Source: Phallusia mammillata
Taxonomy: Eukaryota
Reading direction: 5' to 3'
NCBI GenBank assembly: GCA_965637545.1
Contig: OZ281501.1
Coordinates: 15,314,001-15,378,000 of the forward strand
DNA length: 64,000 nt
Below the pieces are notes generated by a model. That model had not been told where the DNA came from, searched no databases, and worked only from the letters and a program-made list of their open reading frames with translations. The position numbers and the translations under genes were made by a program. Below are positions 19,737 through 50,060 of the stretch, one piece after another; positions within the stretch are counted from its first letter, which is position 1, and the number at the start of each line of letters is the position of its first letter.

Positions 19737-19920
19737 NNNNNNNNNNNNNNNNNNNNNNNNNNNNNNNNNNNNNNNNNNNNNNNNNNNNNNNNNNNNNNNN
19801 NNNNNNNNNNNNNNNNNNNNNNNNNNNNNNNNNNNNNNNNNNNNNNNNNNNNNNNNNNNNNNNNNNNNNNNNNNNNNNNNNNNNNNNNNNNNNNNNNNNN
19901 NNNNNNNNNNNNNNNNNNNN
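19737..19920. other. Assembly gap (184 N)
   Basis: Run of N bases. ORFs 19610-19954 and 19672-19944 are artefacts of reading through it. Confidence 1.
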
Positions 19921-26410: not shown

Positions 26411-27263
26411 CCAGTTCAGCGTAACAAATGTGTACCACTACTGGGCCTTTATTTTTGAAATCTTATATCGTTTCACGTCGAAATGCCCCTTTAGAGCAGT
26501 TTCAGAAGAATATGCAACATTCTATTTTAATGAGTTAAGTCGAATTAATTTGCCTCGGTGAAAGAAATTGTAGCAGTACAAATTTATAACAGGCATATAT
26601 GTGACTGTTCGTAGAGCTTTACGTGGTATATAACGGGTTAATCGATGGAAATAAACGTATTTCCAATGATACGTGGCACCTCCCTGTGGACAACTAACCT
26701 TCTGGTGGTCCCAATGCAATCATCTGGCAGTCGCATGCAATCTTCATGTGTAGCATTCAACGTTTTAACTCAATTAATGTGTATGTCAAAGCTAACGTCT
26801 TTTCCCACTGGGTAATCAGTCAACCGGCGTTTACGAACAAGATTGAGCAACTGACAAACTCGTCAGCAGGTTGCAGATTAATTTTGTTTTACATTTCGAT
26901 GGCTGAATGACAGGTGTCGAAAACATAGTGCATTACTTCTGCTGGGGTAACGCAATGCGATTACTGATACTATTTTTTTATCTGTAACGCCGTTATTACG
27001 GACTTGCATTTTCAATCAGTGCGTATACTGTCATTGGTTTATATATCAAAACTTCTTTATTAGCATAGAGCTATCGTTGCAAAAGATGATAAAAATATCA
27101 CATTCAAATCAGATTTACTACAGTCTCTCCGACAAAAACTTCGTGAAAATAATTGATTTAGCCAAGTAAGAAAACGTTTTAATTCTAGGTTTTGTTTCAG
27201 CTGTTTAAAGTGTTACTGGATAATATTAACTAAACCTGACTGTTAATTCCTATGATTTCAAGC

Positions 27264-30200
27264 ATGCGTTCTACCTGGATGATTGGATGGATGTTATTAC
27301 CGATTATTACTGTTATCGGAAAGAACACAAGCATTAGTACATCGTCGAACCCTGGTAAGTAAAAGATTACATTTTTCTATTTTCACATTTTTAGCGCAAT
27401 ATAATACTTTTAGGATTTTTTTCGATAAAACTAATGAGGCAGATTATAAAACGTAGTTTTAAGGCCACAAGTCAGATTCTAACTTGACGTGTGTAGTGTG
27501 CGTTCGATTTAAATTGTAACCATGGAAACTTTTATCAAGGTTTTGATTTTGTGATACAACATTTCGAAAAGGCAACTGTGTTGTTTGTTTCGCTGGAAAT
27601 AAACGAGCCATTGAACTAGAAAAACGTGGTGTTGTAACCAAAAAAAACAGGCCTTGAAATCAAACACATTCACGCAATTACTTCAACATTTTGGCTAAGC
27701 TGTTGTCACTACTTGTCATTACGTGTAATATATTGATGACAAGCCAACGCTGCGTATTTGAGTGGAAAACGTCGATGGATCTAGTGATTAAATCTCGTTG
27801 AAAGGCAAAAGCAAATTTATGAAATGATATACTGACCACAAAAGGTCAACCAGTCCGACTTTTTAAAGCCTAAACCAGAAACCAGAAGGGCACTTTACCA
27901 GGTCCAACTGGTGTGGTTTCCAATGGTAGCCCTTCCCTTTTCCTGTTGATAAAAAACAAAGACTTTTTCCAGTTTAGTGTCCCACCGCAATACCGCAATG
28001 TGTGCTGTTGTTTGATAATCGACAAGCACGTAAATCAATTGCCGAACATTTTTATCAGTTTGTTGAATAAGCAAATACCAATGAGCTATTATAAGCTGTT
28101 GACAAACAAATATAATTCTTTCGATCTCCTACAAGGAGGCTGGCGTTTCTACACACAATAAGATAGCTTGGATTAACAGAAGACAAATGGACAATATCGA
28201 TTCATTGATTCCGTCGTACGTATTGGAACGATGTTATCTTATTATTAATCGCAGTTACTTTTGCGCTGCGTTAGGCCCTTGATGAGTTAAACACGCTCCA
28301 GTGCTAATGAAATATGTGATTTTAAGAGTCTTAACATAATGCTCATAAAACCCATCTTTGACATGCTTGATTATGGGCTCAATATGGTCATCGCTAAATC
28401 GTGCAAAAATAGTTTTTACCGATCTTTTGTTGGTTATATTTTCACATCGACTGGACAACAGTCTCCTGTTAACGTCCAAAGAAACGAACAACGAAATGTA
28501 TTTTATATCTGAGAAGGTTAATTTTGCCCGTCGTCAAAAGCTTAACGGATTTATGTGCTGATAGAGTGATGAGTGAAGCTTATGTTTTTCGAGCATAGAA
28601 ATAAAGTGACAGAATCCAACATACAAAGACCGAAAGAGAAATTAGATTGTGGTGGAAAACCTAACACTTGATATTACTATGAAATGTTCAAAAACATCAA
28701 TGTTTCACTAAGTAGTGGCCAAACGCGTTTTTTTGTACACAATTATTCAATATTTAAGCCTATGGGAATAAGCATGCAGTGGTAACCAGTTCATTCCCGC
28801 CATCTATATCACGTGGTGGGTTTACGTGACCGAGGCAGGCAGAAGAGGAAGGTGTTGTTACGGGAAACAAGAACAAGTTCCTCCCGTTTACTGGGAATAC
28901 TGCAGGCGAGCGTTCAGCACAATTAACGATAAATTTGGGTTCTTCTTTTCCTAAACCGGTTAACAAGTGGAAGAATTCAAATGCATGTAACAGTTTTGTC
29001 TGCCAGGGCGTTCGATTGTAAACGTTGCTTTTTTATTTGAATCTGTTAACATTGTTAGTGTGACGCGAAATCGTTTATGTGGATAAAAATCAATTGTTTT
29101 GTAACCCTATGGTTTGGGGGAAACGATATAATGCCTTGCACTAAACAACAAAACACCTATAATACTACTCACTTTGCAAACTAATTCTGTTTTTGAACTT
29201 GTTTAAACCCAACCAACAAACGATATTCATTTAATCGGACCGGTGGTCCATGACCCAAAACAAGTTGAGAGCCAATGACATGCAAGCAAAAATTATGCTT
29301 TTTGCTACTATAATAACGGCTTGTTTAATTCTATGTCAGGTGTTTCAAAGGTGGCGTTTGGAAACAGTAAATGACTATAGGTGGCAAGATATAGCAAGAT
29401 ATCGAGATATATCGGTGTTTAAATAAGTGGCCTGCAATTTGCGGCATCAAAGGTCATAAATCTTTAACAGAAAAAGGTCAATTTCGAGATTGATAAAATA
29501 AAACAGGCATTTAACTAAACAATTCGCCATTTGTTGGCTATTTAATTCCAACATACTTTCGTAGGGGAATTGTTAAGACGCGTGACACTTCAAAAACCAA
29601 TTGTGACGTCATAGACCTCCCTGGCACTTTATTCACGTTTTTTATACATTCTTGAGTCACCCCTCTTTTTAATTGATATGCTTAAGACTGGGACTGATTG
29701 AAATCTCACAAGGGTATTGAATTGCCGCAACAGGAAAAGCCTTTTATGGTGAGCATGAGGCGTATCGTAAGGGCGTTCAGTGCACAACGAGGGTTTACAT
29801 TTTGCCCACTTAGGAATACTGTATGCGACCATGGGTAAATTTTTGAGCAAACAAATTGCGTAATTAGGCAAATCATAACCACGCCAACTTCAATCTGAAC
29901 AAAGACTTTGCTTTTTGAAACGCGACGACGTGCGTTGTTGTGGTAAGCTCAAGAAAAAAACACATCATTTTTTATTCAGTAAACTGTTTGGTTAATCAGA
30001 AACATAAAACATAGGATCCTGCACAGATGGCGACAAAAGTGATTGCTGAAATGTCTAGCAGTTATGTTGCTGATTAAATTGATATTCAAGTCCGTGTCTA
30101 GTGTTTCTAAACTGTTTGTTGTTTGTTAAAACAATAACGTAAATTTACGCATTGTTAACAATATAGGCATAACATCTAAAACCTCTATAACAAACTAGTT

Positions 30201-33200
30201 TTAAATAAAGAGTCCTGCCAGACTGTTGGGGCAAAAAAACTGTGTTTCACAACTTCCATATGGTAAACTTATTGCCAAAGTAACAAACGGTTGGGCAAAA
30301 ACAAAATGAAATACATTTTTAAATATTTCGTTTACACCCCGTTATTATTACCTTACACGCGGTCGATCACCTTTGAAACTGATTGTTCAAATATTTTTTT
30401 TTCTGTTTAAATATTCTCAAGGGAAATATTTACCCTCCATCGATAAATCTATTACCAAATAACATCCTAAAGATCCATACTCATATAGGCTTCTTAGTTT
30501 AATTTATTTGGAATCAATATGGCTTAATTAGGAAGAGCGAGTCAAATAATGACGACATAATCGGGATGATGGTGACGTCATTGCCACGTATACGTCACGC
30601 ATTGTGACAAAACACATTTTAGCTCACAACATTTTGTAGATAAAACATGTAATCTGCGTGCTACGTAGTAAGTGTATAGCTTTTCTATATAGACCAACAA
30701 GGTCCCTAAAAACAGCTATTGAAACACGAATAAGATAAATTTAAATGACTTGCTTCTTGCTTATATTTTATTTCGTATATCTACCGTGAAAACTATTAAA
30801 TAACAAAAATTTTAATTTCAGCTGGCAGCAGAAGGAATTAAGAAAATCCCACTGCTTAAAAGAATTCATACAAATTCCCCTTGCATAATTCATGCTTACA
30901 GTAAACAAAAAAGAAGAAATTAAAATTACAGACAGGCATCATAGAATACAGAACTAGTAAAAAAAACAATATTTATGCCAACATATATTATTTTAATGGT
31001 TGCTTGTTGTGTTGTTGCTAACGTAAGACACTGATAATACGACATGGGTTGTTACCGAGAAGTCAAAAAACAATATGTCGACTTTCTAGTCCTTTTATTG
31101 TAATGAGCAAAATGTGTGTTTGTGCTCCGGCCAAAATGTGTTTCTCAAGTTTAAGCGTTCAATAACCGTTAAAGTGACGTCGCTTGTTGCTTGTCAGTTA
31201 TTATTAGGCATGAAAAATTTACAAGCGACAACCTTGCTGTGCTGTCACATGTCAAGTCAAAGCAACAACAAAATTTAAACTATGTGTTTTTGTTCTAACT
31301 CACTTTTCTCAATATTTCTAGACACAGATTTTTCTCACTTGGCATAAATTTCGCGGAATCGACTAAATTTTTAGTAATGATAATGAGGTAAAAAATGGGG
31401 TGGACTCGAAACCTTGTACGAACTCTATTGAATACGTGGACTCGGTGTTCAATAACTATGCACAAAGAATATGAAATTTTTCTTTTACTAGATTGTTTCA
31501 TAAAAGCTTACATTTAAAGATACACAACCGTCGCCGACACCTTCCTCAATGCCTTTATTCACTACTTCTAATGTTACAATCTGTGGTTCGGATTACTTTC
31601 AATGTTGGGATACAACTTGTCTTCCACGTGAGAAGTTCTGTGATGGATTCAATGATTGCCCTGATGGTTCCGATGAAGTTGAGTTTATCAGCTTGGAGAA
31701 CGTTGTGACTGTGCCTTGTATGCCTCTCTGGCAAACTGGCCCACCCAGGTATAATGTGTTTTGGAAAGTTTCACTTTTAAGTGAGGTTAATAAAGGGTAA
31801 CCGAAGTGCTATGGTTACATAACAGGAAAAAAATCTTCATATTAAAATACAATAAATAAAAACTTTGACAACTTAAACCATTAGATCCCATCAGGGGGGT
31901 TCCTACTTTTATTTTATTTTTCTTGGATTAAAACAGCTAAAATTAAGATTTTTGCTCTTGACACTTCTACTGTACCCACGACATAAATATCCAATTAAAA
32001 AAGGCTTCTAATAATTTTATGCAGATCAATACACTGAAAAGGGTTAAAAGACACTTAGCTGAAAAGAGGATGAAAATCAAACCATTTTAAAATTTGTGCA
32101 CACAAATTATCACGCAACCATTTTTTCCAACATTAGGTTTAATAAAAACGGCTAAATCGACTATGTTGAGATTTTTTCGCCTTTTTATCAGCAATTGCAT
32201 TTACTACCAAGAGACTTTTACTTTAGGTTTTGCTTGCTGTGGAACAACAACTGGGTGTGTGATGGTCAGAGCCACTGCATCGAAGACAGGGACGAAGTTT
32301 GTGCAAACCAATGCCCCGGTTTACCTGAAACTTATGTTTGTAACGGATACCCCAATTGCCCAGGTAGTATTTTTGCACCACTACACTAAAACCAATTGTT
32401 CACAAGTGCGTACATGTTGGTTAAACATCCCTGGACACAAATGATGCTGAGCGTAAATTCAGGCCCAAATCAAACCCGGTTTATTGAAACTCAAGTCCGA
32501 ATTCGACCCGAGTTACAACTCTACAAATCCGACCCGACTAGAAACTCATTCTCATTCAAAAGTCATTGCAGGGATATGATAAGTTTGCATGCTGTTCCGG
32601 GTTGGGTGACACTAAAACACTGAATATTGCGGAACGTCGCAGAAACCGCTAAATATCGGGTAAATTGCTGACGGTTAGTGCTATTGGGGTTGGGTTGAGG
32701 TTTTATAATAGTATATGATTCAAAAAATGTCCCTGTCTAAAACTTATTCAGCTATTTCCTGACATTAGGCAAAAATGCTATTGCGGGATATTGCGGGACG
32801 TCGCGGGTTATGGCGGGACGTCGCGGGAGATGGCGGGACGTCTCAGGCGCGGAATGTATTCAGCGGAATTTTTTTCATGATTTTCTATAATAAAACCTTA
32901 TCGCAACCTTAGTAGCTCTAACCGTCAGCAATTTAACCCGATATTCAGCGGTTTTCACGACGTCCCGCCATCTCCCGCGACGTCCCGCAATGTCCCGCAA
33001 CATTCAGTGTTTTACTGTCACCCTACGGGTTCGGTTTGAAAAATTGTTTTAATTGGGTCAACATTAGCATTCAATACGACAGTTTTGATCAACAGAGATG
33101 TTTTTGTTGGCAAGCTAGTACTTTTTGTTTCATGTAATTCAAACCCATTACGCTTCGAGTAAAAAACCAATTGTCTCGAAATGTTTTTATATAAGTCATG

Positions 33201-36200
33201 CAGCTGAAACTTTTTGTTACTATCGGCAGAGAAAAAAAACACAAAAACGTAGGCAGACGAGCATTTGAAAAGAATAGCACTTATCAGGCAGCGATCGGTT
33301 AATTTAAGAGCTGTCCATTTTGCTTCATGCGTCGGGAGTGTCTCATTATTAAAAGTCAAAATATTTTGTGAGCTCTTTACTGAATTCACTGTGTCATGAA
33401 AAAAGAAAAGTTTAGTCGGCGTTTTCACTTATACTTCTCAAAATGTAACAGTATAACCACCGACATGTTGAGACACCTAGCGGTAATAACCAAGTACTAC
33501 AAATTAATTACTAGATGGCAGTGATGAGCTGAATTGCACGGCGTTTTCCTGTGGGTCCGACACGAACATTACTGTGTATGAGGGTCAGTTGTGTGACGGA
33601 ATAATGACCTGCCCAGATGGAAGGGATGAATGCATGTCCAGTTGTAACGATTGTTTTTGCGATGGGGTAAGTTACAAACACTTCTGAGGTTAGGTAATTG
33701 CACTTTTGTTTAAAATTTCATTTTACTGGTGTGAACATATTGGCTTAGAGATATGGGATAATGTTGATTACGTAAATTGGGCAGTTGGTACAGAAAAGTT
33801 TAACTTAAAGAGTGTACTTGGTCGTAAAATGCGGATAAAACAACTGTTGGTCCATAAAGAGCAAGAACATTGTTACATACATACTGTTTGCTTCCAAAGC
33901 ATTTTTGCTGCAATTAGTTTTTATTACACAAATCTGCAACAAAAATACAGTCTACAGATTTTTAGACCTTCAAATTTTTAGTTACAAATACCACTAGCAG
34001 TACAAAAGGGTAAAAAATATTTACACTCTAGTAATTTACAATTGCTTGAATTGTATTCAGATTTACGACATATGCGCAAACGGTGAGATTTGCCAGGTTG
34101 CAGACATTTTCTGCAGATTTTGCGCTGACAAGTCCTCCATTTTCCCGTACGACAAGGTATTGTGACAATTTTTCTAAAGTGATGCACAAAAGAATTCCAG
34201 TTCCCAAATCAGTGGTTTTTAATCGGTGTGAAATTGTGTACTTTCGAAAGGAAATTGTATACGAATACAATAATTGTTCTTTTAAGTTTTGGTTGAAAAC
34301 GTTAGTCATAAATCTGCTCGAAATTCGAACATGGTGATTGCCTTTAGTGGGAAACTATACTAAAAAGATTAATAACCACTGACCTTGGGAATGTTTAGGT
34401 TTATTTACTACAAGTTTAAGATAAACTTTTCTTTGACTGAGAAAAAACAATAAGGCAATATTCCCAAAATACCGTAAAGGTACGAGGCCAAGCATTTCAA
34501 AATTTAGAATCAAGACACATATTCGATACCATTTGCCAGTTTGCGTCACTATAAGAATGAAACTTGGGGCATCAAAAAATGAAACAGCAACACAAAAAAT
34601 TTCTACATGAGGTCTTTTCTAACAGATTTGTGATGGAGAAATAGATTGTCCAGACGCAAGTGACGAACTTTTTTGCAACCAGACTTTCGTGTGTGACAGC
34701 GGAGAGGTGGTAAGAAAAGTACACTTCTGTAAATAACATTTAAATCTACTACAACTTGATATTTTTCGCAACTGCTTTATCATCATTTTTTTCTATTTGC
34801 AACGTGTCTTTCTTCGCCCTTGTTGTGGTGTTGGTTCTTCGATACTTTGACTTGCCCAAGTAAACAACTTTATGCTACAATATATACTCGTAGCTGTTGA
34901 TGGTCTATTTATCAAAATGTTTGTTTGACCAGCAATAGACGTGTAAAAAGTTCACAACTCTGCTTTCGTGTTCAGATTTATCGCATTTCTATTTGCGATG
35001 GAATCAGAGACTGCTCGGATGGAAGTGACGAAGCAATTTGTTCAGTCTGTCCCAACAACAATAAGTAAACATGCTTGCGTTTTAAAACATCTGCATAAAG
35101 AATCAACGCTTTCATTCAAGATAGAGTTTTGATTTTTTTTTCCTTTCTAAAAATAATGTGGCAAAATAAAAAAGAACTTTGTTAACTTGTTAATTAAAAA
35201 AACTAAAGCAACATACAACAAGAGTTAAACGACGCACTGATATACCTCATGTCCTTCTGTATACAAATATACATATTGAATGACAGGCAGCAAAGTTTAA
35301 AAACTTGCCAGCTATACCAAGTTTTGTGTACTTAATCGTAGTTTAAGTTATGTCAAGGTTTTGTACGCCAAGTAAACGTTTAAATGCAATTGGACCGCTA
35401 CAATGGATTGCACATAGCGCATTAACCCAACTCAACTCAATTCGAAAACATTTGATAATCAACACGTTTTTTGGTGCAGATTGATTCCGAGATTCCAGTT
35501 CTGCGATGGCATTAACGATTGTGGCGATCATTCAGACGAATGTGGCGGTCATTGCCAATCTACATGCAAGTAGGTATTACAATGAGCTTATCTATAGCGG
35601 GTAAGTTGCCCTGCAGAGGAAAACAACCACTTGGGGCCGCTTTGTGCTCAGATTTATTTGCGGATCAGGGGAGTGCATTTCCAGCGCTTGTTTCTGCGAC
35701 GGTATCATCGATTGCGCTGATGGCAGCGATGAGATCATCGGTAACTTTCCGGGTGAAGTTCATATCATGTGCAACAACACCAGAAATCATTACGGTGGTT
35801 CATGTTTGCTTCAGCAGGTATGAAGTTATGGATTCGTTTTCTAGTTGTTGTGAGACAAGAATTTGGAATGAAATGAAAGTGTATAGATAGTTGAAAAAAG
35901 GTTGCATTATTATTTTCGCAAAAAAGTACTTGGAACTGTTGGATTGTTTTTGTATCTTAAATTACTGTGATGATATTTGGTGCATCTATTTAAGGCAATT
36001 GATTTACTTACTTTCAAACGAATTTTAGGTCAGAAGATTTATAACATTAGTAATGTTATAGCGAGTCTAAGTTAAAAACATAAGAAAAAAACACTGACTT
36101 TTTCAATCCAAACTTGATCGTTAAACTAGTTGTAGAAAAGTCTGTAAACTTCCCTGAAAACGCACTTTTGTGCTGAGATCAGTACAACTTTTCCTATTTT

Positions 36201-39200
36201 GAAAATGAAGAAAAGTTTTGACAATTCTTTGACGCCTAAACAATAGTGGTGTGTATGTGATGCTGGGCTACCAATAACGGTTTTGGGTTTAGTTGTAAGG
36301 TGGTATACTCCTGTTGGTAACAAAACCAACACAACATTTTACTACAGGATTCATGGTTGTGTGATCTGGTTGACCACTGCGAGGGAAGAGTGGACGAATG
36401 CCAACAGGATTGCCACAAAGCCTCGTTTTGGTGTGATACTGGAAAGTGTATAAGAGTTGAATCGTTTTGCGACAACGTGCAAGGTACATAGACGTTAAAG
36501 TTTTGATCTTTTGTTGAAAACAAAGTTAAAATCCCTTAAATTGTTGGCTAAAATGGTACTTTAATTTCTCGTCGGTTGGTAAACCAGTTACAAGAATTGA
36601 AACAAAATCACAACCAATATTGAATAAAAGTTTCCAAATTTGACATTTTCATCATATTTGTTGTTTACTGTCTTAGTTCGTGCTGTTATTACAAATATGG
36701 TTTGGTCCACTGATCTATTTCAGTGCAGTTCTGGCGAGTTTTATTTCAGTGCAGTTCTGGCAAGTTTCGTTCTCATAGTGTTTGGCCAATCAGTAACAAA
36801 GGTTGCACACCCCACCTTTAGACACATACTGAAACCATTATGCTTTTGAACTCAAAATAGTAGAAGAAGCAGAGTTGTAAGTCAGGCCGGATTCAGGGTT
36901 GGGTTCCTTCATAAAAGCGGGCTTGATTCGGGCCCGACTTTACACTCTGTGTCAGTACTTTTTTAACTAGCTAAGTAGCCAGTTGTTGGACCTGACCTAA
37001 TGTCAAACAGTCCTAAAACGACTTGTTCAGACCAATTGTCTATCATTGTCTATTGCGTTTATCGTCTTGGTCTTTCCTGATTATATGCTTCAATATATGG
37101 GCCTGTCAATCAAACGTGCGGGTCTAAACGGGCTTCTCAAAACGATTCGGGTTCGGGTCGAGTTTGGGGCTCCAATTCCAGTCCCCTTTACAACTCTGAG
37201 ACGACGATATTTATGTGATACAGATTGCGAAGACGGGACAGACGAAGTGCCTTATGCTGGGCAGTCTGGGCAATTTCCATGTAAGAACGTGTTTCACAAC
37301 GATCGGGAATGCTCACTTAGTTTGCAGCATCCTTGGACATGCGATGGACTGCAGCAGTGCACCAATCGAAGCGACGAATGTTTACCTTATTGTGAATCAT
37401 CGTTTATTTGCGGCTCCGGCGAATGTATTAAAAGAGATTGGGTAGGTGTTTTGTTCGGCTAACATGATTCATGATGTTTATGAGCGACATCATAGAAGCT
37501 AACTATTGTAACCTCTTTGTTTTTCATCTTTGGGCACATTGTATCCTCAATGAGGCAAGATGGTATTAACATAAAAAATTCAAGTTGACCTTTAACTACA
37601 AACATGAGCATAAAAAATGCATCTATCTATTAAAACGCATTTTTTGAACTTTAAACTGGATATATAGCCATAAAATGCTAAAATTGTGTTAAAAGAGGAC
37701 TGCAAGAAATTACCCATGTTAAAAGGTAATGTATCATAACTTATTTCTTGCAACAAATTCAACTGTATCATATTTCTTTGTTTTTAAACCTTGCTCCAAA
37801 CGTCATTTGAATAATCAACTACAGATATTCACTAAATGCAAGTTCAATTCAAAGTTTTTATTGTTTCAATTTGCTCAGGTGTGCGACGGAGATATAGACT
37901 GTGGTGACGGAAGCGATGAACACACAACAGACAGCGAAGCCTTCACCTGTGCAAAAACCCGGCATCCAATCACCAGAACATGTCTTTTGCCTATCTCAAT
38001 AACCCAAGACAATATAAGCGACTGTGACCGAGATATGGATATCTTAAGCCGCGTGATGCCAGTAGAGAGCGACGCAAAAGGGGTAAGCACCTGTTACATG
38101 TTGATTAATTAATTTGGGTTGAAATATTCTTTTTAATAATCACAATAATAATTTTTATTGAAGTTTTAATTTCTCCATGTTTACCTACTAAAGATTATAA
38201 TTTTTAAATTGATATCCATACTACTTTTTTAAATGTTAATAAATTTCTGCTATTACATTACTAACATGCAATATGTGCAAAAATCTTATTTTGTAATCAT
38301 GTATTTTTTTATTAGAATAAAAATCAGAGTTTTTATATCTATGGCTTGGATGCAACCAAATTTTGTGAACAAAAAGTTACCAGTATTTTCTTAAACATTT
38401 CAATGAATTTCTGTGATGCACCTTTTTGGTTCAACATCCTCGATCCGACAAAAATGCGAATTTCATAAACACGTGATTTCTCAAAAACTTTTTTTTCACG
38501 GGGTTCGAACCCAGGACTATCCCGGGGACGAATCCCGATCAGGTTTTTTATGTCTGTATATGGGTCAGGCGCGTCAGACCGTTCGGCCAAGTTCCTTTCC
38601 TTACAACGGAAAACTACTGGTAAAAAACACCGGTTGTGGCCGAACACGTGTTCTGGTGTGACAAGCATCAAAAACGGCAAAAAACGTCGGTAAACACTGC
38701 AAATCGAGATTTTAATTCATTCCAACATAGCAGATTGAAACCACAAGAGAGCTCAACCTTCTCGAAAAGTGGTAAACCAAAAGCAAAATGGCGCACAAGC
38801 CATACCAGCTTGGTGAGTCAGCAAGAGGTCAAATCGCGGGGGTGCAGCATTGGCCCTCTTATCTTCAGTTAGATGACTCACACAGCCAACAAACAGCCGT
38901 TAATTGGCATATGGCATTCAAAACGTTGTAGCGGTGGTAGGAAAGCGTCAGAGATTAGAAAAGCTAAAATGCAAATACGTGGGTAGGAAAAAAATGCCGT
39001 TGGTCTGCATTGGAAATCTAGAATGCTATTTTCCCTGATTTCACATCGACCCGCTAAAGCCGTATGTAGAGAAACTGAATCTGACTGCAGCAAGCATGAA
39101 GCGAAGTGAAACAAAACGCAGTGGGTTGACGTTCACAAGTTACGAACAACACATTGACATGACCTAACTTGACATAATTGTACCGACGTGGTAAAATTGA

Positions 39201-42200
39201 AAAGTATATTACCTCGTCAAGATTACAGTAAAGTCGATTTGGCTTGAATTGTGTGCTTATAACTCCAGTATAATTGAACATAAAACGACACACCAGGCAA
39301 TGCCACTGCAAAATATATTTAATTGCAAACTCATTTTTAAGCGTTTGTTCAACAAATTTTCCACAAAATGTTTTTTGTTAAGTAAATTTTTATGTGACGG
39401 AATACAAACCTATAAACATTCCCTTTTGACAAATGTAGCTATCAAAGCAGTTGTTCCGGAAAAATAAAGAAATTAAATTTTCTCATCAAAGTTTGCAAAA
39501 AAACTAAAGAAGGTCTTTGATTGCTTCATTTACATACAAGGCATTATTTGCTAAAATTTCCTTAACGACGCCAGCGCTGTGTTTTGCGCAGTAAAACTCA
39601 ATTTAATATGTTTTTAGTAGAATTTTTTTTTTTTTGCGAGGAAAGCTATAGCGCAAAAATAAATCCTTAAAACGCGTAACTAAAAGAGTACTAAAAGATA
39701 ACTACAACGTCATACGATCTGGATTCAAATTTTGCGTAAGGCCCATATCGGAATTTTATACCCGGGTAAAGACTTATGATTGCGGAAGGTAGTTCAACAA
39801 AGATCGGCCGATAAGTGAACTAAGCGACGCATGGAGGATCGTACTCAAAGCGGAAAAGGCGTAAACTCGAAAGCGGATCCTGAATTGAGCCTCCGGCGGT
39901 CTTTGCGGTTCGCTTTCGCCACGATAAGATCAAGATGAGTCGGTCTAGCTCAAAGACGAAAGGATAGGAAGATGGCATGACCCTTGAGTTTAGACTGAGC
40001 TGACGCAAAGTATAATTGGCTGTGTGTGAAAAACCGGTGGCGTAGCTTTTTATGCAAACGTAACGCTTCACTTTATCGGTTGGCGTACATATGTCAATAG
40101 TGACAACTTACCACAACGCAAATCTGTGTTTGCTTGATTGTACCAAATAATTGTAATCAACAATGGTATTCAAAGCCATATAATTTCAACACCAGTGCAT
40201 AACAACGTTTTTCGAACCCATCTAAATAATTTTAAAATATAATTTTTCACAATAATAACCATTATGCCATAAATATTGTTAGTTGCATTTTTTCACCAAA
40301 CTGGACTGGTTGTTAAAAACATTTTGTATTAAGCTGCGACAAGAATTAATTACAGACAACTGTGAAAACACTGTTTTAAAGCAGAGTGTTTTTCTTTAAC
40401 GTAAAATTCACCAACCCATCTTGGTATGTTATATTTTTGCAGTTAACTGTTTTCCTAAAACAAATGAAATACATGCACTTTGAAATGTTGACAGAAATAG
40501 TAAATTATTTTGGTTATTTTCCAGACGGGCGGTTTCATGTCAAACGTCGAGACACTGGCTGGGAATTCATACTTTCGATGCAAAGGTGAAAAGCGCATCA
40601 TTCCAGGTTGGTGAATAATACATCTTTGTATCTCAAGTTATTTTTTGCCAAAACCCGTTAAGTATGATTTGGTCACAGGTGAAAGTGTCAAAATATGTGA
40701 TTGCAGATGTCTTCGGTTAGTTACATATCCATATGCGTACAAATTATAGTTAATTCTGTTTGAGTTGATGCACATTGTGTTTTGAATTTTTCAAATTTCT
40801 AAAATTGTTTGTAACAAAATTATTAGAATTAAAAATCAATATTTTTTAATTTTTTACCCCACAGCCCACATTTGCACTATTTCAAAAGATATTGAAATCT
40901 TTAAAAATAATGTTTGCAAACGTGTAAATAATTTCCTACCTACATCGCAATTTTAGAAAACGGAATATTTTTTGCAAACGTTTACAAAAAACAAAGATGC
41001 GCTGTACTACTAAAGGTTAGAGGTCCTATAATCATACGCGATGTGTTGACGACCTATATATGCCATTTTCAAAATGCATCCTCCAAGCTTTTCTATAATG
41101 AGGAACATTTTTAGTGGAGAAACAATGTGATGGAAATTTCGACTGCCTGTTGCTTTCCGACGAGTGTTTGTGCGAAAAAACCCCGACAATCTGCGGTCTA
41201 CTGTGTTACGGCACATACTGGCCACTACGAGGCGATAAAGATCCATGTCTGAGTTGTGACGTCGGCGAGGTCAGATGCGAGGAAACTTGCATACAAAGAC
41301 ACCAGGTCAATTAAATAACCAACTCTGTGTCGTAAATGCAAAGTATTGTTTTGTTGATAAATCTGGGGAATACTCTTTGAAATTTCCCATGATTATGCAC
41401 TTTATGAATGAACGCTTGTTGCAGATTTGCGACGGCAAAAGAGATTGTAGCGACGGCATAGACGAGCAATCTTGCACTCCGGACGTACAATGTGCCAAAG
41501 AAGAGTCCGAACATTGCAAACCTAACTTTACCTGTCACTCAGTAGGTAAGCAAGCTTACGGAAAAGTAAGCAGCAAATCAAAATCAACGCATTCAAAACT
41601 ATATAAGGATAGGAAAGATCAATAATCAGCAAAATCACTTGCCACGTAAAATAAACTTTCAGACACGCATTTTTTCAAAAGCCCAATTAAGAAATTTTGT
41701 ACGTAGTAACCGCAATACAAAGGTAACAACACCAGAATCTTTGCAAATACTTGTAATGTCATTAATGTGTTTTGGACAACTTTCATTCCCATATAAAACC
41801 TTAAACTCTTTAAGGCTGTGTTGTTTTCTATCAAATATAGCCTATAGGTGACAAATTTTAGAACATAAATTCTTATCGTGTAAAGAATCAACAACTGTTG
41901 TATGTGTTTTGGTGAAGACAAGGACAAAAATCAAAACCACACAGCTTTAAAGTGCGATGGCCGACCAGAATGCACACATTATGAAGATGAATGCGATTCC
42001 TGCCCAGAACCGCTTCCAGCATTTTGTCAGCGGGTCAATGGACCAGCAATTTTCAACATGTAAGTTAGAATATAATCCAGTACAGGTTATGTAGAAATAG
42101 GTTTGTCAATTACACATAGAAAAGACAAGTAAAAACCAGCAAACAGCATCTACTGCATTTTGAATCTGTAGCAAACTATACCCACTGGCCACAGACCCCA

Positions 42201-45200
42201 ATATTATTTTCAAAAGTGACAAACCCTTATTATTTTCACAACTGATAAACCCCATAGGATAATCGGTGGGTACGAAACATATGAAAAAGCAGTTTTTATC
42301 GAAAAGGACAAAATTAAGTTAAACATTTAGTGTGGATTTATTGACTGGGATTTTATTCATGCAGCCTTTCAAACACATTAACGGCCCCCACAGAGGTTTA
42401 TGGACTTTTTGAGAACCTGGTCTACTTCAACCATTGTAGAAGCTTGTTAAATCGCCCACGCCCAAAAAGACTTTTAATACAATCCCCCGACAAAAAAATA
42501 ATTATTTGGAGCCTTTCCGTCGAAAAAGGGGTTGTTTTTCCGTGGAAAATGTGTTGTTCTGATTAGACAAAACTGTTATAATTGAAAACACTATTAAAAA
42601 AAATCACGACAGTTTGCTTTGTTACAAACGCGTCCTATTTACTTGTTTTCTGTGAGTCCAGGTCAAATTTTCTCCGTAACTCATTTTCCACTAAACTTTC
42701 AACTATTCCAAATCGCCAAACGTGAAATTTCGAGTCAAAAGGTCACAGCAGAATTTGGATTTCTAGGAAGTTATATTCGTGCAACACCGGAGGAGTTCTG
42801 CTACCGGCTTCCGAGGTATGTGATGGATTGTCCATGGACTGTCCGGACGGAGCGGATGAAAAAGACTGCCCTCATCGGATTTACTGCAACAGCAGCGCTT
42901 GGTTGGAGCACGGAAAAGAATTTGGCGGACCCATTCACATTTCCAAATCACAGGTGAAATAGTTTATGCAAAAAAGTACAAGTTCTTGTTCAATTCAAAA
43001 TCCACAAATTAAAAGTAAGAAATTGTCGACCATTACTGTTCCAGCTTGCCTGAAAGTGCTTAACATTGTATGGCCAACAAAAAAGCCTTTTGGGTACCAA
43101 TAGCGGCCATTTATTTACATCAAGGTTTGGTTTAAATGATTGTTTACAACCTTGAAACTATTACTTTGAACCAACTTAAAATGTCTATTGCACTTATTTT
43201 AACAACGTTCACTTCTAGATTTGCGATGGGAAAATCGACTGCAGAAACCAAATGGACGAATCAGATTGTCCCGACCACTTTTACTGCGAAACAGGTAGAT
43301 TGGTACACTATATACAGATCTGTTTGTAAGTTTAATGATGAAAATTACGGCCCAAATACACGTAAAAAGCGACAGGACCACATCACTTACACCCATTTAC
43401 ATCCACTTAAGTCACATAAAAGAAAGGTAGGTTTCCATTTTATCATCAGGAAATCCACTTTTTGTTCCCATTCGCGCAAAAACTGATGGCAAGGCAGACT
43501 GCATCGACGGAAGTGACGAATGTCCGTCGACGAGCTTCAGCGATGACGTATTTGCGTCACGTGAGCACATGATTCGTGACGCGGCCTTACGTTACTTGAT
43601 CTGGGTGATGGGCGGCCTGTCAATCATCGGTGAGGAGGTTTTTGTTTGTGTTGTGTTTTTGCATCCGGAAAACGTTGAGTGGTAACAGAATGATAATTTG
43701 GAGTTTTAGTTGAAAATTAAGTCCGCAGAGAGATACGAAAAGGTTTTCCTTGATCGTGTGGCTCACTCAAGCCAAAACTCAAAACCACAATACTCCCCCA
43801 AGAAGAAACACGAGACATAAATAAAGTTTATCGTTTACCACCTTCTGTCTTTTTTGTCGACGCATTTACTTTTTGTGGTTTATGTCAAAGGTTATTTAAA
43901 AGAGTAAAAGTTTGATTTAGTAAAGAAACAAAGTTTATGTCCTTGCACTGCAGGTCATATCGTATCGTCTTTAGGGAACAACTTGGACCATATGTAGAAA
44001 ACACTGAACTATTATTACCCCTTATTAAAGCTTAAATTTAGAACAATAGGAAACTGTGCAGGCAAAATGGAGTCATGACTGATAGGCACATTGCAATCCC
44101 AAAATCAATGAATGGCAACAATTTCTCTATTCAACGTGGCATTGGAAGTCAAAAACACATGAAATTGAATAAAAAAGTTTTTCGCCCTCCAACAACACCT
44201 TAGTACTTTTCTAAAGATTTTTTCTATTTTTTAGGAAACTTGGCAGTTCTGGGTGAGACCTTATACGATCTTCTGCTCTCCAAAGATCGCTTCAAGAACA
44301 AACGACCGTTCGCGAAGGTCAACCACGTATTAGTGATAAACCTGGCGACGGCAGATCTTCTCATGGGCGTCTATCTCATCCTCCTCGGCTCTATGGCCGC
44401 ATCCACCTCCGGAAGTTACTGCCTGGAAGACAAATCTTGGAGAAGCTCTCACACATGCGCTTTACTGGGCTCCATCACTATTATCTCTTGTGTGACGTCA
44501 GTGTTGATGCTTGTCATCTTGACGTCATACCGGCTGTACGGGGTGCTACGACCCTTCAAGTGCCAACACGTCAGCTACGTCACAGCCCTGATGTTTGCCT
44601 TCTTGGCGTGGTGCACGGCGTTCATGTTAGGTAAGTTTACGAAAAGCAAAGTTCATTAATACCGTCAGCTGTTTGCTAATAAACCATTTCTCGCTACTAT
44701 CCTTTGTAAATCACTCCCAGTTTCGAATGAAAACTATTGAAAGGAGAATGTACCTAAAAAGATAAATGTTTTCGCCCGAAACTGTTGGGATGTAATTCTG
44801 TGTCAAGATTTGTTTTTGGTGTAAAAGAGCTGAATATGATTTTGATCTGTTAATTTCTAACTATCACCTTATGACTGTTTAAAAAACCAGGTGTTTTCTC
44901 CTTGTACTGGCAGTTGTTTTCGAAATTTTTAGTTTATTAAATTGCTGTGTGGCCCAATAAAACTGTCTCTATGTCCGACAGTTTGGTTGCAAAAATGATA
45001 AAAATTTATTGGGCAGAGGTAAAAATCGAATCCAAAACCTTGGTCAGGCCTAGACAACTTTGTTTGTTCTTTTAGAAGTCGCAAGTTAATCTGATAGTAC
45101 GTATAATAACCGAATATTTTGATGGGACTTAAGCTCTGCTTCCAATTGCAAATCCCTTGTCGTCACGGTTCATTTCACACGCGTGGGTACGTCACAATCC

Positions 45201-48200
45201 ATATTTCGTCAGTGACTTGGTGGATCGTCGAACCCTAGAGGAGTTTATCAGAAGGGTCAACCTTTTTTACGTCCATGATGTCACCGCGCTAGCAAATGAT
45301 TCCAAACCTCTCTCAGTAAGTGCAATAAATTTAACAATTTCAGAAATGTATTTTTACCGAACTAATTGGACAACACCTAAAAAAACATTAAGAGTTTAAT
45401 TGCAATTATAACGCTGGTTAAAACACACACTAATGAGTAAAACACAGACTAATGAGTAGGTGTTGCATTGAGTGCATGAAAAGTTTGTTTTGTGCTCTTA
45501 ATAAACACGTCTCTTTAGACATAATGGTATTGCAAACAAACAATCTACTTGTATTGACTAAAGTCATATCATCGACTGTTGGAATCAGCTCCATGCCCCT
45601 ATTGCCAAAGTTTAAAACTGACGACAAAGCACAGTTTTTTAGGAAATTTATTTAAACAGATCAAGGCACTAAACCTAATTCAATAGGATTCGTATGAAGT
45701 TATTTAAGGACTTGACATATACATGTTAAGTTGTAACGTTCACTATTGACGTAAATGGTATTGAAATCCGTACAATAAGCTGATAGTGATTACAAAGGCA
45801 AACAAGTTTGTGTATAATTCCACGGAAACCGTTTAACCGAACGTCTAACTGAATGAAGGAAATGCATATCCGGCGTAGGCGTTTTGACATTTTATTCCAT
45901 ACGTTTAATCAGGTGTTATAACTCGAAATGGCGTTTGCTCCCGCACATTTTGAGGCGGCCGTCTGGCATTTAGTTAACGGCAGATTACGTTATTTCGAGT
46001 CAACCTGGATTTACGTTGCGGTTGGTACGCAAAGGCTTTTCTCCAAGACACATAAGCGCCTACGCAAAGTTGACATTTAGAATATACGCTTTTGGAGGAG
46101 GTTAAAGGTTAAAGAGAACAGGTAACATTTTATTTCTAACCACAAAATGCGTCAAAAATGCATTTCGGTGTGGGAAACATGCAATATGTGGCGAATTGCA
46201 TTTTTGCGTTGCGTGGGTGTTGTAATGGCATTGCGGTTGCGGGTAGTTTTGTGGCCAATTTTGTTTACCAGCATGCAATACAAAATGTTACTGCGGCAAC
46301 GAATTAAAACAACAGCAACGGTGATTCATAGCATTTTATATGCAAAGCAGGGCAGGCTTTCTATTATTTTTTCTATTAGTCACAGAACCTTTGACATGAA
46401 GAAAGAAATGCATTTCGAACAGTAAAAAAGCTCCTACTTAGATTCGTATTAATATTGAAACGTTTTATTTTTATCTTAATTTTTACTACGCCCCTTTTTA
46501 ATCACCTAAAACATGAGAAAGTTATAATATCGACAAAAAATGCCATCTTTTCAATAAACGTAAACGTCAAAAACATTTCAACAATTTCTTTGTCAGGTGA
46601 CCACTGGAGGGATCACGTGGTCAGAAATTCAATCAACCATGACGTCAACGTTTGGTGCGGAGTCCATACGAGGCGTGTTCGGCTACTACAGTGCGCATAG
46701 TGTTTGCATGCCGAAGTTATACGTCACCAGTGATGACGTGGGATGGGTGCAATCAATGGTAAGCCCAAAATCAAAATAACACCACTTTTCTATTTGAATA
46801 AGGCATCCAAAATGTTTTTCAACAAAGCGAAAAATACACTTCATGTATTTAACTGTGGATAAGTTTGAAATATTTTAAATTCAGCGAAATTGAAACTTTC
46901 GGAAAATATTCATAATTTTGGAGTGATTGACAGCAAACCAGATTTACAGTGAAACAAATTGTAAGTGGTGCAATGTGAATGGAACCAAACAAAGCCTTGT
47001 AGTTACATCAACAAGACACAATTTTTAAGCAAATGAAAAAAGGGATGATTTCCATGTGTCACTGGGTGAACAGTAAAGCGAAGCATCCGGTTTTTCGGTC
47101 GCGAAGGGGGGTAGAACACACGCCCTGTCGTCAATCGTCAAACCCTGGCTCTTTGCCACACGCCAGCCTTCGCAAATAGATTCCAGGAAAGCAAACTGAA
47201 CGCAACTACATGTTTAACCCGCGCGCGCGTTTGCAACGAATTCGGTGATTAAGGGGAACCAGGGAGTCGGTTTTGCAAAGGACAAATGACGACGGTGACA
47301 CGAAACAAAATCGTGATTGCTCGAAACCGATTTACAGGAACGAAAAACTGAGCAGTCATTCGGTTCACGACCGGGACGGAGTAATTCTTGAATTAATCAT
47401 TTCGAACATTGCCAAAATTTGTTGGCTAGTGGACTATGGACTGATGAACCCCTATAAGGGTTGAAAAGCCTCCAAATTGGCACAAGCACGATCACATTAG
47501 CCGCTTTATAAGCCCCAAATGGAGTTAAACATGAACGAATCGGGATATTTCGTGCCCACTATCAATGTTATTACTTTGTGTACACGTTTTGCGTGTTTAG
47601 TTGGGGAAAAACCTATTTTAAACATTGCAAATCAATCAAATCGCGTGCAAAGCCTTATGATAATTATTTTTCTCTGTAATCTTTATTTGAAAACTACAAA
47701 TTTAACAAACATTTTTCGTGGAAAATGTAAAGACCAATTATATTATAAAAACAAGAATACTGTAGCGCTGTTTATTGGCAGCTGCCGCCACAATACAAGG
47801 AATATGCTTTATCTTGTTTCAACAGGTGATCATCATATTTAACTTTGCCGCGTTCATCTATATTGTTGCATCATACGTGTTTATCTTTTACAAGACGAAC
47901 GCGACAAAAACGAGGCGCAGCAGGTGAGCCATTGTGACTGGAACACTACTTGCAACATATCTAAAATAAAATATGTTTCTAAACTGATTTTCACAAAGTG
48001 AACAAAAATTACGTTCTGTTAAAGATTTGCAGTTGAACTTTTGTATTGATTTTTAGGATTTTTAGTTTTTTTTTTTTTTTAATTTAGTAAATCCAGAATG
48101 GAATAAAAAACTATTAAAATGTTATATATGGTCGACAACTAAAACTATTTTGAAACAATTGAAACCGTTAACTCTTTATTTGAATATTTTTATTGAAGTA

Positions 48201-49596
48201 CAAAATGTAACCAACGCAATATATTAGTTAAAGAAATCAAAGAAAACCGCTGTGCGTCAAAAAGGAAACTTTAAATAATAATTTAATGTTGATTTTTTCA
48301 GGCAAAACTCGATGCTTCGACGCATTTCCTATCTGGTTGCCACAGACCTTGCGTGCTGGATCCCGATTTGCGTCATGTCGTTTATGAACTTAGCAGGGGC
48401 TCCGGTCCCCGAAAACGTAAGTTCAATCTAGCGGGGACAATTTCTGCGTAACTCCAAAAATACCATTTGCGTCAAACGTCGCATAACGCGAGTCCTTGGA
48501 AAAAACAAAATCCGCACGCTTTCAGTCAAAGTACTCATGGTGAAAAAACAACAACAAATATCCGGTTTTGATTCGTTGACGTAATCCGCTTAGCCCGCTT
48601 CACAACTGGCCGAAAATAGATCGCCAGTCGTATGGGAGTCGAACGTAAACAGTCTGATCGCCGGTTACGCCAAGCAAGCACGAACCTACGGAGCCTCCAT
48701 TCGCCATAAACCACACTTGGCTAACTCGAGTCTATTTCAGTACCGTGGTGACGTTGTGGTGCGTCAAGTAGCGCTTGCTGACCTTTACTTGGCCGTGGCC
48801 GTTCGCCGTCGGTACCAGTTAGCGAAACTGAACTTGTCCAATAATTAGCGAAGCAACAACCGACCGACGGCGTATAGTTTTTTCGGCCCAATAATTTTCC
48901 GACAAAGCTGTCAACTTTTGTCGAAGTATTAAGCCACGGATTACTAGTTCGTGATGTTTTTTTGCCCGGCGCGCGCCATATTGAACTAATACCTAGGTTA
49001 ATGCGTCAATTGATCTACCAGTATAGCTAATGCTTGTCTTTTCGGTGTTTTTTGCAGGCTTACGCCATTTCGGCTGTAATTTTGCTTCCGATCAACAGCG
49101 CGCTAAATCCTTTGCTCTACTCCAACGTCATTCAGCGGATCGCTTTCAAAATTGTTACATGTGGAAAAGGGTAAGACTGAGATTTTTTAAATTTGCATGA
49201 GAACATGAGTAAAATGAGAAAAGAAAAAGGCTTTGTAAATTGAACCAAAATAACACGTCACTCTATTTAAGAAAATGCAATCTCTCGTTTTGAAAAAAAT
49301 ATTACAAACAAGATGCTCTTTTGTTCTTCTTAAATTTAAAGACTGTTTGCATTTGTGACGTCAACAGAAAACTGACGTCAGAAGTGACGAGACCGCACGA
49401 AACACGTGACAACCGGAGCTCTGACAAGGCGTCAACAGCTTCCAGGGAGCCTTCCCTCCGACGAAAAAAGGCCCAAAGCGAGAAGCTTCACGTTGCCATG
49501 AGCACCTTAAACAATGAGAAAACTGGAGAAACTGTTCTATCATCCGTTAAAACACCTGGAATCGATGATCAAGAAGTTACATCTCCGATGTTGTAG
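27264..49596 (+). CDS. Multi-LDLa G protein-coupled receptor (RXFP/LGR/GRL101-related 7TM; about 18-19 LDLa repeats, no LRRs), 1289 aa, 25 coding exons
   Basis: Exons, all GT-AG with compatible phases (total 3870 nt): 27264-27354 (signal peptide MRSTWMIGWMLLPIITVIG), 31520-31748, 32227-32363, 33515-33666, 34626-34709, 34976-35064, 35480-35569, 35652-35817, 36348-36483, 37224-37441, 37879-38082, 40525-40606, 41115-41305, 41425-41545, 41918-42059, 42767-42953, 43219-43294, 43450-43629 (last LDLa, hinge, TM1 RYLIWVMGGLSIIG), 44235-44630 (TM2 INLATADLLMGVYL to TM4), 45134-45315, 46597-46758 (YYSAHSVCMP), 47826-47923 (TM5), 48302-48416 (TM6 ATDLACWIPI), 49058-49170 (TM7 LPINSALNPLLY), 49368-49596 (Ser/Thr-rich tail, TAG). 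Repeated CDG...DC.DGSDE motifs. Confidence 0.9.
32604..33023. mobile_element. Long-TIR non-autonomous DNA transposon (GG...CC termini; Merlin- or MULE-like), 420 bp, nested in a CGGGT repeat in GPCR intron 3
   Basis: About 100-bp imperfect inverted repeats starting GGGTGACA(C/G)TAAAACACTGAAT. Internal GCGGGACGTC tandem units. Flanking 8-mers TCCGGGTT (32596-32603) and TACGGGTT (33024-33031) differ by one base. Confidence 0.75.
36716..36767. repeat. 26-bp tandem duplication in GPCR intron 9
   Basis: TATTTCAGTGCAGTTCTGGC(G/A)AGTTT x2. Confidence 0.85.
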
Positions 49597-50060
49597 CTGA
49601 ATATACATGTTTTACCACCTATAGTGTTGGGTTAAGGTCAATTGCCTTCGGACACAGAATAGTGGTAAATAAAGTGTGTTAGTTGTTCAGGAATACTGTA
49701 TTTTGTTACTGACTCAACGTGGGGGTTTAAATGGAGTTCAACATTCGTATTGCAAGTAAACTATTGGTCGACTGCCGGCATTCAATTGTTTAAAAGCATT
49801 GAATGTGTAAAATGAAAGTCGACCCTTCTACCAAATTTGTCAACAAAATGTAGTGAACGCTACAACTGCCACGTGTTCTGCTATGCCATACAAGGCATTG
49901 TTGCATTGCTCTTCATGCCAATCTTGCCAGTAATGTGGTCTTTAGTAAGTGGTTTTTAACCTCTTTGTTACGGAATTTTTTTATAAGTTTTTAGGTCTTT
50001 ATGGAACCTTACGTACAACTTAAAGGTGCCGCGGCTTAACAGTGGTTAGCCCTTCTTTAA

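Follow-up and report, generated by a model that had tools for sequence, protein, structure and literature searches.

An LDLa-module stack on a relaxin-receptor-like seven-helix core: a probable intron-rich member of the tunicate LDLRR-GPCR family in Phallusia mammillata

In a 64,000-nucleotide stretch of the Phallusia mammillata genome (NCBI GenBank assembly GCA_965637545.1, contig OZ281501.1, positions 15,314,001 to 15,378,000 of the forward strand; hereafter, the window), positions 27252-49596 of the + strand probably constitute a single intact, expressed gene of 26 exons that belongs to the tunicate LDLRR-GPCR family of G-protein-coupled receptors (GPCRs). Its product would carry a stack of LDL-receptor class A (LDLa) modules, linked by a hinge to a seven-transmembrane (7TM) core resembling that of the relaxin receptor RXFP1, without leucine-rich repeats (LRRs), and ligand binding to the stack would operate a switch of the RXFP1 type. 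The predicted protein (1317 residues, frame open throughout) comprises a signal peptide-like start, about 19 LDLa-type modules, a 20-residue hinge, a rhodopsin-type 7TM domain, and a C-terminal tail. A sequence-only reading of the window had proposed such a direct fusion of an LDLa array to an RXFP-type 7TM without LRRs, and it is borne out by the RNA-verified exon that the two parts share and by RXFP1 as the best match in the PDB. The same reading had placed the gene at 27264-43629. The gene is real, and exon 1, whose reading frame opens at 27252, has its second Met at 27264; however, 43629 is the last base of exon 19, at TM1, and the gene continues for another 6 kb, with TM2 to TM7 and the tail at 44235-49596.

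Transcript evidence and absence of leucine-rich repeats

Five sequencing runs of one organism contained 5-22% of the words sampled from 41000-49700, which is about the exonic share, and contigs from four of these runs (two studies) were placed on 43180-49179. The type of the runs ("RNA?") is a guess, but the spliced joints show that the contigs derive from RNA. Over 43180-49179 the contigs covered predicted exons only and then ran on into sequence from 49369. Seven GT..AG joints were observed, each in at least three of the four runs, and intron depth was zero. The first exon supported in this way is exon 18 (43219-43294; joints in runs X1, X2, and X4), which encodes ICDGKIDCRNQMDE and the N-half of the last LDLa module. 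It is followed by exon 19 (43450-43629; joints on both sides), with the C-half of the last module (a 4-Cys variant; E=0.0032 with the Pfam profile PF00057), the hinge FSDDVFASREHMI, and TM1. The stop-free frame underlying exon 19 extends over 43431-43682 and reads from the C-half KTDGKADCIDGSDEC into the hinge PSTSFSDDVFASREHMIRDAA and TM1 LRYLIWVMGGLSII; the passage of the last repeat (TDGKADCIDGSDECP) into hinge and TM1 (FSDDVFASREHMIRDAALRYLIW) within one exon, as originally described, therefore holds. Exon 20 (44235-44630; joints in four runs; PF00001 E=7.7e-9) contributes the end of TM1 (GN), TM2, TM3 (with YRL replacing ERY), and TM4. The second extracellular loop (ECL2) is divided between exon 21 (45134-45315), which holds the first part of a long insert and matches the ECL2 of paralogs and ortholog, and exon 22 (46597-46758), which holds the remainder and GVFGYYSAHSVCMPKLY with the C-hydrophobic-P motif. 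TM5 is found in exon 23 (47826-47923), TM6 (CWIP) in exon 24 (48302-48416), and TM7 (NPLLY) with the helix 8 region in exon 25 (49058-49170), all bounded by joints. The loose end AAAACTGACGTCAGAAGTGACG of contigs X1 to X3 past 49170 is identical to the sequence from 49369 and marks exon 26 (49368-49596), which encodes a Ser/Thr/Lys-rich C-terminal tail and a TAG stop, followed by the 3′ untranslated region (UTR). Since a single X1 contig spans the last LDLa exons through TM7, the LDLa exons and the seven helices lie in one RNA, with splicing shown from the last two LDLa modules to TM7. A split into two genes was rejected, as the last LDLa module and TM1 share an RNA-verified exon and one contig spans both parts.

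Upstream of 43219, contigs X1, X2, and X4 end in a loose stretch that consists of 42922-42951 plus AG, and exon 17 therefore ends at 42953. At position 42930 within this exon, the window and the X4 contig have C (GGA CCC, Pro) and the X1 contig has G (GGA GCC, Ala), which is likely a Pro/Ala polymorphism. Strict thresholds in a splice-site search gave almost zero junctions; they were relaxed, and the search was then replaced by a dynamic programme that combined splice-site scores with codon usage learned from paralog open reading frames (ORFs) and that chained exons 1-17 from the ATG at 27252 to 42953. Of the 4864 nt of the X1 contig, 2426 nt precede exon 18 and 1116 nt follow position 49170. 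The predicted upstream coding sequence of exons 1-17 amounts to 2403 nt, leaving 23 nt for the 5′ UTR. This agreement in length was not used to build the model, and it is the main support for exons 1-17.

With only 23 nt spare upstream of exon 18, the transcript leaves no room for an LRR block. A Pfam scan of every exon gave no LRR match; the pattern LxxLxLxxNxL was absent from the joined protein model and formed no cluster on either strand between 24 and 52 kb, introns included; and LRR families were found in 0 of the 53 closest full-length relatives. The LRR search that had been suggested as a check on the sequence-only reading thus came out in its favor. Hidden LRR exons were rejected on these grounds (no motifs in exons or introns, none in the 53 relatives, and no room in the transcript). 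A pseudogene was likewise rejected, the frame being open throughout.

LDLa array, hinge, and ECL2

Between 31.5 and 43.7 kb, the + strand carries stop-free pieces with LDLa motifs. The exon chain derived here again gave exons 2-18 as the continuous Cys-rich array that had been described from the letters. Pfam, protein, and PDB searches were run exon by exon, while the joined protein was used in scripts for the motif count, a family-derived LDLa profile, hydropathy, and the tree. PF00057 (Ldl_recept_a) matched 15 of 17 stop-free array pieces scanned whole; when trimmed exons were rescanned, exon 16 gave a weak match and exons 5 and 14 gave none. Most of the matches were half-modules, covering profile positions 18-37 where an exon starts and 2-24 where it ends, because introns interrupt the modules directly ahead of the CDG core. 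The joined model displayed 17 strict C-half cores of the C-D/N-G-x-x-D-C-x-D-x-S-D-E type, and a profile built by script from 34 canonical repeats of relatives detected 19 stretches (15 with E<0.001, one with 0.017, and three with 0.24-0.54). The profile count that had been called for therefore makes the earlier figure of about 18-19 repeats a fair one, with several modules being 4- or 5-Cys variants that lack C3 or both C3 and C4. By the same profile, the number lies at the upper end of the family and is not unique. In the window DNA, the strict LDLa motif occurred six times on the + strand and not at all on the - strand. In most modules, the acidic cage D-x-x-x-D-x-x-D-x-x-D-E that characterizes ligand-binding LDLa repeats is complete. 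In the last module (43452-43523), the third and fourth cysteines are replaced by Phe and Thr, and C1 and C6 lose their usual partners; its best PDB match was to the LA modules of VLDLR, with Phe and Thr at the two cysteine positions, and the membrane-proximal 4-Cys variant is conserved in the family consensus.

The upstream exons were predicted as follows. Exon 1 (27252-27354), with a start codon at 27252 or 27264 and a signal-peptide-like hydrophobic N terminus, ends at the strongest donor in the area (CTG/gtaagt) and was placed by the dynamic programme. The first complete LDLa module (CGSDYFQC...CDGFNDCPDGSDE) lies in exon 2 (31520-31748; PF00057 E=4.5e-10), which has predicted boundaries and a weak acceptor. 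LDLa halves follow in exon 3 (32227-32363; VCDGQSHCIEDRDE and CNGYPNCP; E=0.0032; dynamic programme) and in exon 4 (33515-33666; DGSDELNC and LCDGIMTCPDGRDEC; E=0.033), whose donor GGG/gtaagt scored 6.0. Exon 5 (34061-34156) is Cys-rich and degenerate, was obtained by prediction only, and is the least certain of all. Exon 6 (34626-34709; E=1.8e-4), which has the best-scoring junction of the relaxed splice scan, and exon 7 (34976-35064; E=2.9e-4), which has a weak donor, encode ICDGEIDCPDASDE and ICDGIRDCSDGSDE, respectively, each with the N-half of the next module. Exon 8 (35480-35569; E=7.8e-4; dynamic programme) contains FCDGINDCGDHSDEC, and exon 9 (35652-35817; E=1.4e-8) contains a nearly whole LDLa module (FICGSGECISSACFCDGIIDCADGSDE) and the next N-half. 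A degenerate core (LCDLVDHCEGRVDE) and an N-half (FWCDTGKCIRVESFCDNVQ) make up exon 10 (36348-36483; E=0.0078), whose junction was found in both the strict and the relaxed scans. Exon 11 (37224-37441; E=2.8e-7) carries DCEDGTDE, TCDGLQQCTNRSDEC, and the N-half FICGSGECIKRDW, and is joined to exon 12 by the donor-acceptor pair 37442/37879. Exon 12 (37879-38082; E=0.0015) holds VCDGDIDCGDGSDE and the start of a membrane-proximal cassette (FTCAK...CLLPISITQDNISDCDRDMD) that fits the family consensus GFKC..C..PQ....D....C. The short cassette exon 13 (40525-40606; ..YFRCKGEKRIIP) was found by the dynamic programme only, without a Pfam match, and resembles the paralog segment NGTFRCHRCLYSDMIISPKQ. 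Exon 14 (41103-41269; QCDGNFDCLLLSDECLC and a Cys-rich spacer) is collinear with a paralog LDLa ORF (E=1e-10) and 58% identical to its counterpart at locus L009, the ortholog described below, which also retains exon 15 (41425-41545; ICDGKRDCSDGIDE and the next N-half; E=7.1e-4) and exon 16 (41918-42059; the KCDGRPECTHYEDEC module; E=0.046; 64% identity to paralog L007). Exon 17 (42767-42953; E=6.5e-5) comprises VCDGLSMDCPDGADE and the long N-half of the next module; its acceptor is predicted and its 3′ end RNA verified.

Hydropathy of the joined model located seven hydrophobic helices at residues 875-1224, with an ECL2 of about 110 residues. The 7TM domain retains N1.50, D2.50, R3.50, the cysteine pair between C3.25 and ECL2, CWxP, and NPxxY. 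Among solved structures, exon 20 matched RXFP1 best (7tmw; E=2.7e-12), with LHCGR at 4.3e-7. The nearest paralog, which is 47% identical to the window gene in exon 20, matched RXFP1 with E=4.4e-27 (next, 2.9e-18), and its hinge and ECL2 were part of the alignment. Aligned via this paralog, the hinge F-A-S-R-E-H-M-I of the window gene would correspond to RXFP1 I396-S397-S-L-E-N-L402-L403, and the ECL2 sequence C-M-P-K-L-Y to C-F564-P565-L566, so that three of four positions of the C-hydrophobic-P-hydrophobic motif fit; the ECL2 motif of the paralog itself aligns with RXFP1 YYGTNGVCFPL. On this reading, the final cysteine of the LDLa array would stand where RXFP1 has the cysteine just ahead of its hinge. 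Conservation of the hinge Ile and of the ECL2 G-Y...C-x-P reaches at least 90% across 53 family members. In RXFP1, F564, L566, and L402/L403 are required for activation, I396/S397 and the LRRs hold ECL2 in an inhibited state, L566 is essential, and the C-hydrophobic-P-hydrophobic motif is common to all LGRs (Erlandson et al., bioRxiv 10.1101/2022.01.22.477343).

Relatives and known receptor systems

An exhaustive HMMER search with the exon encoding TM2-TM4 returned 237 representative proteins at E≤1e-10. The top two (66% and 61% identity) were ORF calls on eukaryotic metagenome contigs and share their exon borders with the window gene at both ends. Collinearity with exons 14-25, at 42-69% identity and without LRR-like sequence between them, was found at the locus of the first of these (L009), an ortholog in another organism. 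In the ortholog contigs (L013:1-7500 and L014:1-6900), the approximately 7.5 kb that separate the counterpart of exon 14 from the upstream contig end showed no LDLa-coding frames, whereas exons 12 and 13 of the window lie within 3 kb of exon 14; the gap may reflect a long intron or a shorter array. Named full-length matches were proteins from Styela, Ciona, and Clavelina, called "uncharacterized" or "LRP-like," and the named top library matches were tunicate proteins with LDLa and 7tm_1 domains. Among 53 matches of at least 600 residues, Ldl_recept_a was present in 52 and 7tm_1 in all 53. Family members have in common a conserved membrane-proximal cassette of about eight modules and differ in their distal modules.

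In the Phallusia genome itself, the TM2-TM4 exon gave at least 150 matches from 277 candidates, with a best identity of 46-47%; about 70 of these occupy uninterrupted 950- to 1376-codon frames and often form tandem clusters. The paralogs are located mainly on contigs C1 (2.1-5.7 and 9.6-9.75 Mb), C3 (0.3-11 Mb), and C5, and their number far exceeds the 14+14 reported for Ciona in 2008. The nearest paralogs, L001, L002, and L003 (C1:9.63-9.75 Mb and C6:5.87 Mb), are nearly identical to one another (tree branches of 0.018). Each consists of two large ORFs, one of 455 codons for an LDLa array and one of 490 codons for the last LDLa modules and the 7TM; they have an intron in mid-module at the site that matches the exon 17/18 junction of the window gene and lack all of its 7TM introns. 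An unrooted 7TM tree of family members placed the window gene among tunicate members, alone on a long branch that lies outside both of the sampled own-genome expansions, and its 7TM identity to the full-length relatives of the tree set did not exceed 40%. What is particular to the window gene is that it is intron-rich, conserved in an ortholog, and, by alignment via the paralog, similar to RXFP1 in hinge and ECL2.

The closest published counterpart is the "LDLRR-GPCR" group of Ciona, with 14 members that have one or 2-10 LDL-A repeats, no LRRs, and TM regions resembling INSL3/relaxin receptors; it was set against LGR7/8 and the snail receptor GRL101, its expressed sequence tags (ESTs) came mainly from hemocytes and blood cells, and lipoproteins or large protein complexes were speculated to be its ligands (Kamesh, Aradhyam, and Manoj 2008, BMC Evol Biol 8:129, PMC2396169). 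The expanded orphan group of LDLa GPCRs in Ciona mentioned in the sequence-only reading is the one described there. Like these receptors, the window gene belongs to an orphan family with a tunicate-specific expansion, has N-terminal tandem LDL-A repeats and an INSL3/relaxin-receptor-like 7TM, lacks LRRs, and groups with tunicate members; however, it has about 19 repeats, compared to one or 2-10 in Ciona, and 26 exons, compared to the uninterrupted 950- to 1376-codon frames of many of its own paralogs. With RXFP1 and RXFP2 it shares LDLa in the ectodomain and, as far as the alignment via the paralog goes, a hinge of the form hydrophobic-[S/A]-S-x-E-x-hydrophobic-hydrophobic before TM1 and YYG...C-hydrophobic-P in ECL2, and RXFP1 (7tmw) is its best solved 7TM relative. 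Those receptors possess LRRs and one LDLa module, whereas the window gene has no LRR domain and about 19 LDLa modules, the last of which abuts the hinge; it also differs from RXFP1 in the ECL2 insert of about 75 residues, the Lys in place of L566, and YRL in place of E/DRY. As for the type C LGRs, LDLa modules do lie N-terminal of the receptor core, but the LRR ectodomain was found in neither the exons nor the introns nor the relatives. GRL101 (Lymnaea GR101_LYMST and cnidarian and placozoan relatives) likewise combines many LDLa modules with an LGR-type 7TM, and a lipoprotein or large-complex ligand has been hypothesized for receptors of that type (PMC2396169 among the sources); compared by description, GRL101 has LRRs between the LDLa array and the 7TM and the window gene has none.

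The tandem class A repeats with an acidic Ca-binding core are a likeness to the LDL receptor and LRP, and NCBI labels some of the relatives "LRP2-like" or "LRP1B-like." In contrast to those proteins, the window gene lacks EGF and YWTD propeller domains and an NPxY endocytic tail and has seven helices rather than one, its introns cut the modules before the CDG core rather than between modules, and several of its modules have 4 or 5 cysteines. Membership in the LDLR/LRP family was rejected, as only PF00057 and PF00001 were found in the exons and relatives and the protein has seven hydrophobic helices.

Elsewhere in the window (G+C content of about 37%), an uninterrupted 517-codon frame at 16980-18533 (+), 9 kb upstream of the receptor gene, encodes a Major Facilitator Superfamily transporter (PF07690, E=4.3e-25), and a 470-codon ORF lies at 11300-12712 (+). 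Positions 19737-19920, outside the receptor gene, are filled by 184 N, an assembly gap or mask.

Proposed mechanism, alternatives, and significance

In the mechanism that we propose, the acidic, Ca-binding LDLa modules would bind an extracellular protein or lipoprotein ligand, and binding would alter the way in which the membrane-proximal cassette and the hinge hold ECL2. As in RXFP1 and other LGRs, ECL2 would in turn act on the helix bundle and thereby trigger G-protein signaling. The LDLa stack would thus sit where RXFP1 has its autoinhibitory LRR domain and control the same hinge/ECL2 switch. Ligand binding to the acidic modules would likely be the input; coupling to Gs would be a guess by analogy. 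The notion of an LDL-receptor-like capture arm for lipoproteins, protease-inhibitor complexes, or pathogens, advanced in the sequence-only reading, restates the hypothesis of Kamesh et al. (2008) and is not new. Since the hinge and part of the ECL2 motif appear to be retained, the ectodomain may regulate that switch rather than simply capture a ligand.

Several observations weigh against this reading, in both its gene model and its mechanism. Exons 1-17 are predicted, and RNA backs only their overall length and the 3′ boundary of exon 17; splice sites in exons 2, 5, and 7 are weak, and compensating errors are possible despite the agreement in length. Modules without two of their cysteines may not bind a ligand in the manner of the LDL receptor. 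The ECL2 exon of the gene itself gave no PDB match even at E=10, and the hinge/ECL2 correspondence with RXFP1 is transitive, passing through a paralog of 47% identity. The position of L566 is Lys or Arg in the family; together with the ECL2 insert of about 75 residues, the Lys of the window gene may mean that the switch works differently from that of RXFP1.

The alternative that survives best, although we consider it unlikely, sees in the LDLa stack mainly an autoinhibitory or tethered regulatory domain in place of the LRRs rather than a capture arm, with self-activation by ECL2 being tuned by Ca2+, pH, shedding, or a co-receptor. RXFP1 provides a precedent, as removal of its LRRs results in high, ECL2-driven basal activity and its LDLa module serves activation rather than high-affinity binding (bioRxiv 10.1101/2022.01.22.477343). 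The apparently retained hinge motif and C-hydrophobic-P, the family-wide conservation of the membrane-proximal cassette next to variable distal modules, and the conserved 4-Cys form of the last module would fit such a role. However, most modules keep the full acidic cage of ligand-binding LDLa repeats, and 19 modules with a variable distal array resemble a binding surface more than a plug.

A more specific proposal, which we hold to be rather improbable, is that the window gene, being intron-rich, single-copy, and conserved in an ortholog, represents the ancestral LDLRR-GPCR form, with the LDLa stack in the exact place of the LRR domain on an RXFP-type self-activation switch, and that the distal repeats may bind a lipoprotein or protease-inhibitor complex. 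If the distal repeats did bind such complexes, this receptor would be the first GPCR shown to sense such large particles.

Very doubtful is the explanation that the receptor belongs to a fast-diversifying repertoire for the recognition of non-self, pathogens, or the environment and does not serve an endogenous ligand. The abundance of paralogous 7TM matches in the genome, many of them in tandem and nearly identical, and the mostly blood cell and hemocyte origin of the ESTs of the Ciona family (PMC2396169) would be in line with this explanation, but the window copy stands outside the recent expansions on its long branch, at no more than 40-47% identity to its paralogs, and a collinear ortholog with 66% identity in the largest exon is what one would expect of a conserved single-copy gene that has a stable partner. 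That the model is materially wrong, through hidden or upstream LRR exons, two genes, or a pseudogene or decoy, is hardly credible: exons 1-17 were predicted rather than read in RNA and the missing LDLa exons upstream in the ortholog leave the distal array unconfirmed by comparison, but the exon shared by the last LDLa module and TM1 is joined in RNA to two further LDLa exons upstream, the X1 contig has the length that the LDLa model requires, the frame is open, and LRR motifs are absent from exons, introns, and relatives alike.

The reading that we prefer remains that of a ligand-operated LDLa stack on an RXFP1-like switch. As a genome finding the gene is ordinary, since the architecture has been published and NCBI carries annotations of relatives. 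Lipoproteins or large protein complexes, the ligands proposed for this family, which has been orphan since 2008, would represent a new class of input to a GPCR. The window copy is a good candidate for de-orphanization, being expressed, outside the recent species-specific expansions, and conserved in an ortholog, which suggests a stable endogenous partner. Having apparently kept the hinge and part of the ECL2 switch while LDLa modules take the place of the LRRs, it also constitutes a natural experiment on the activation model of RXFP1.

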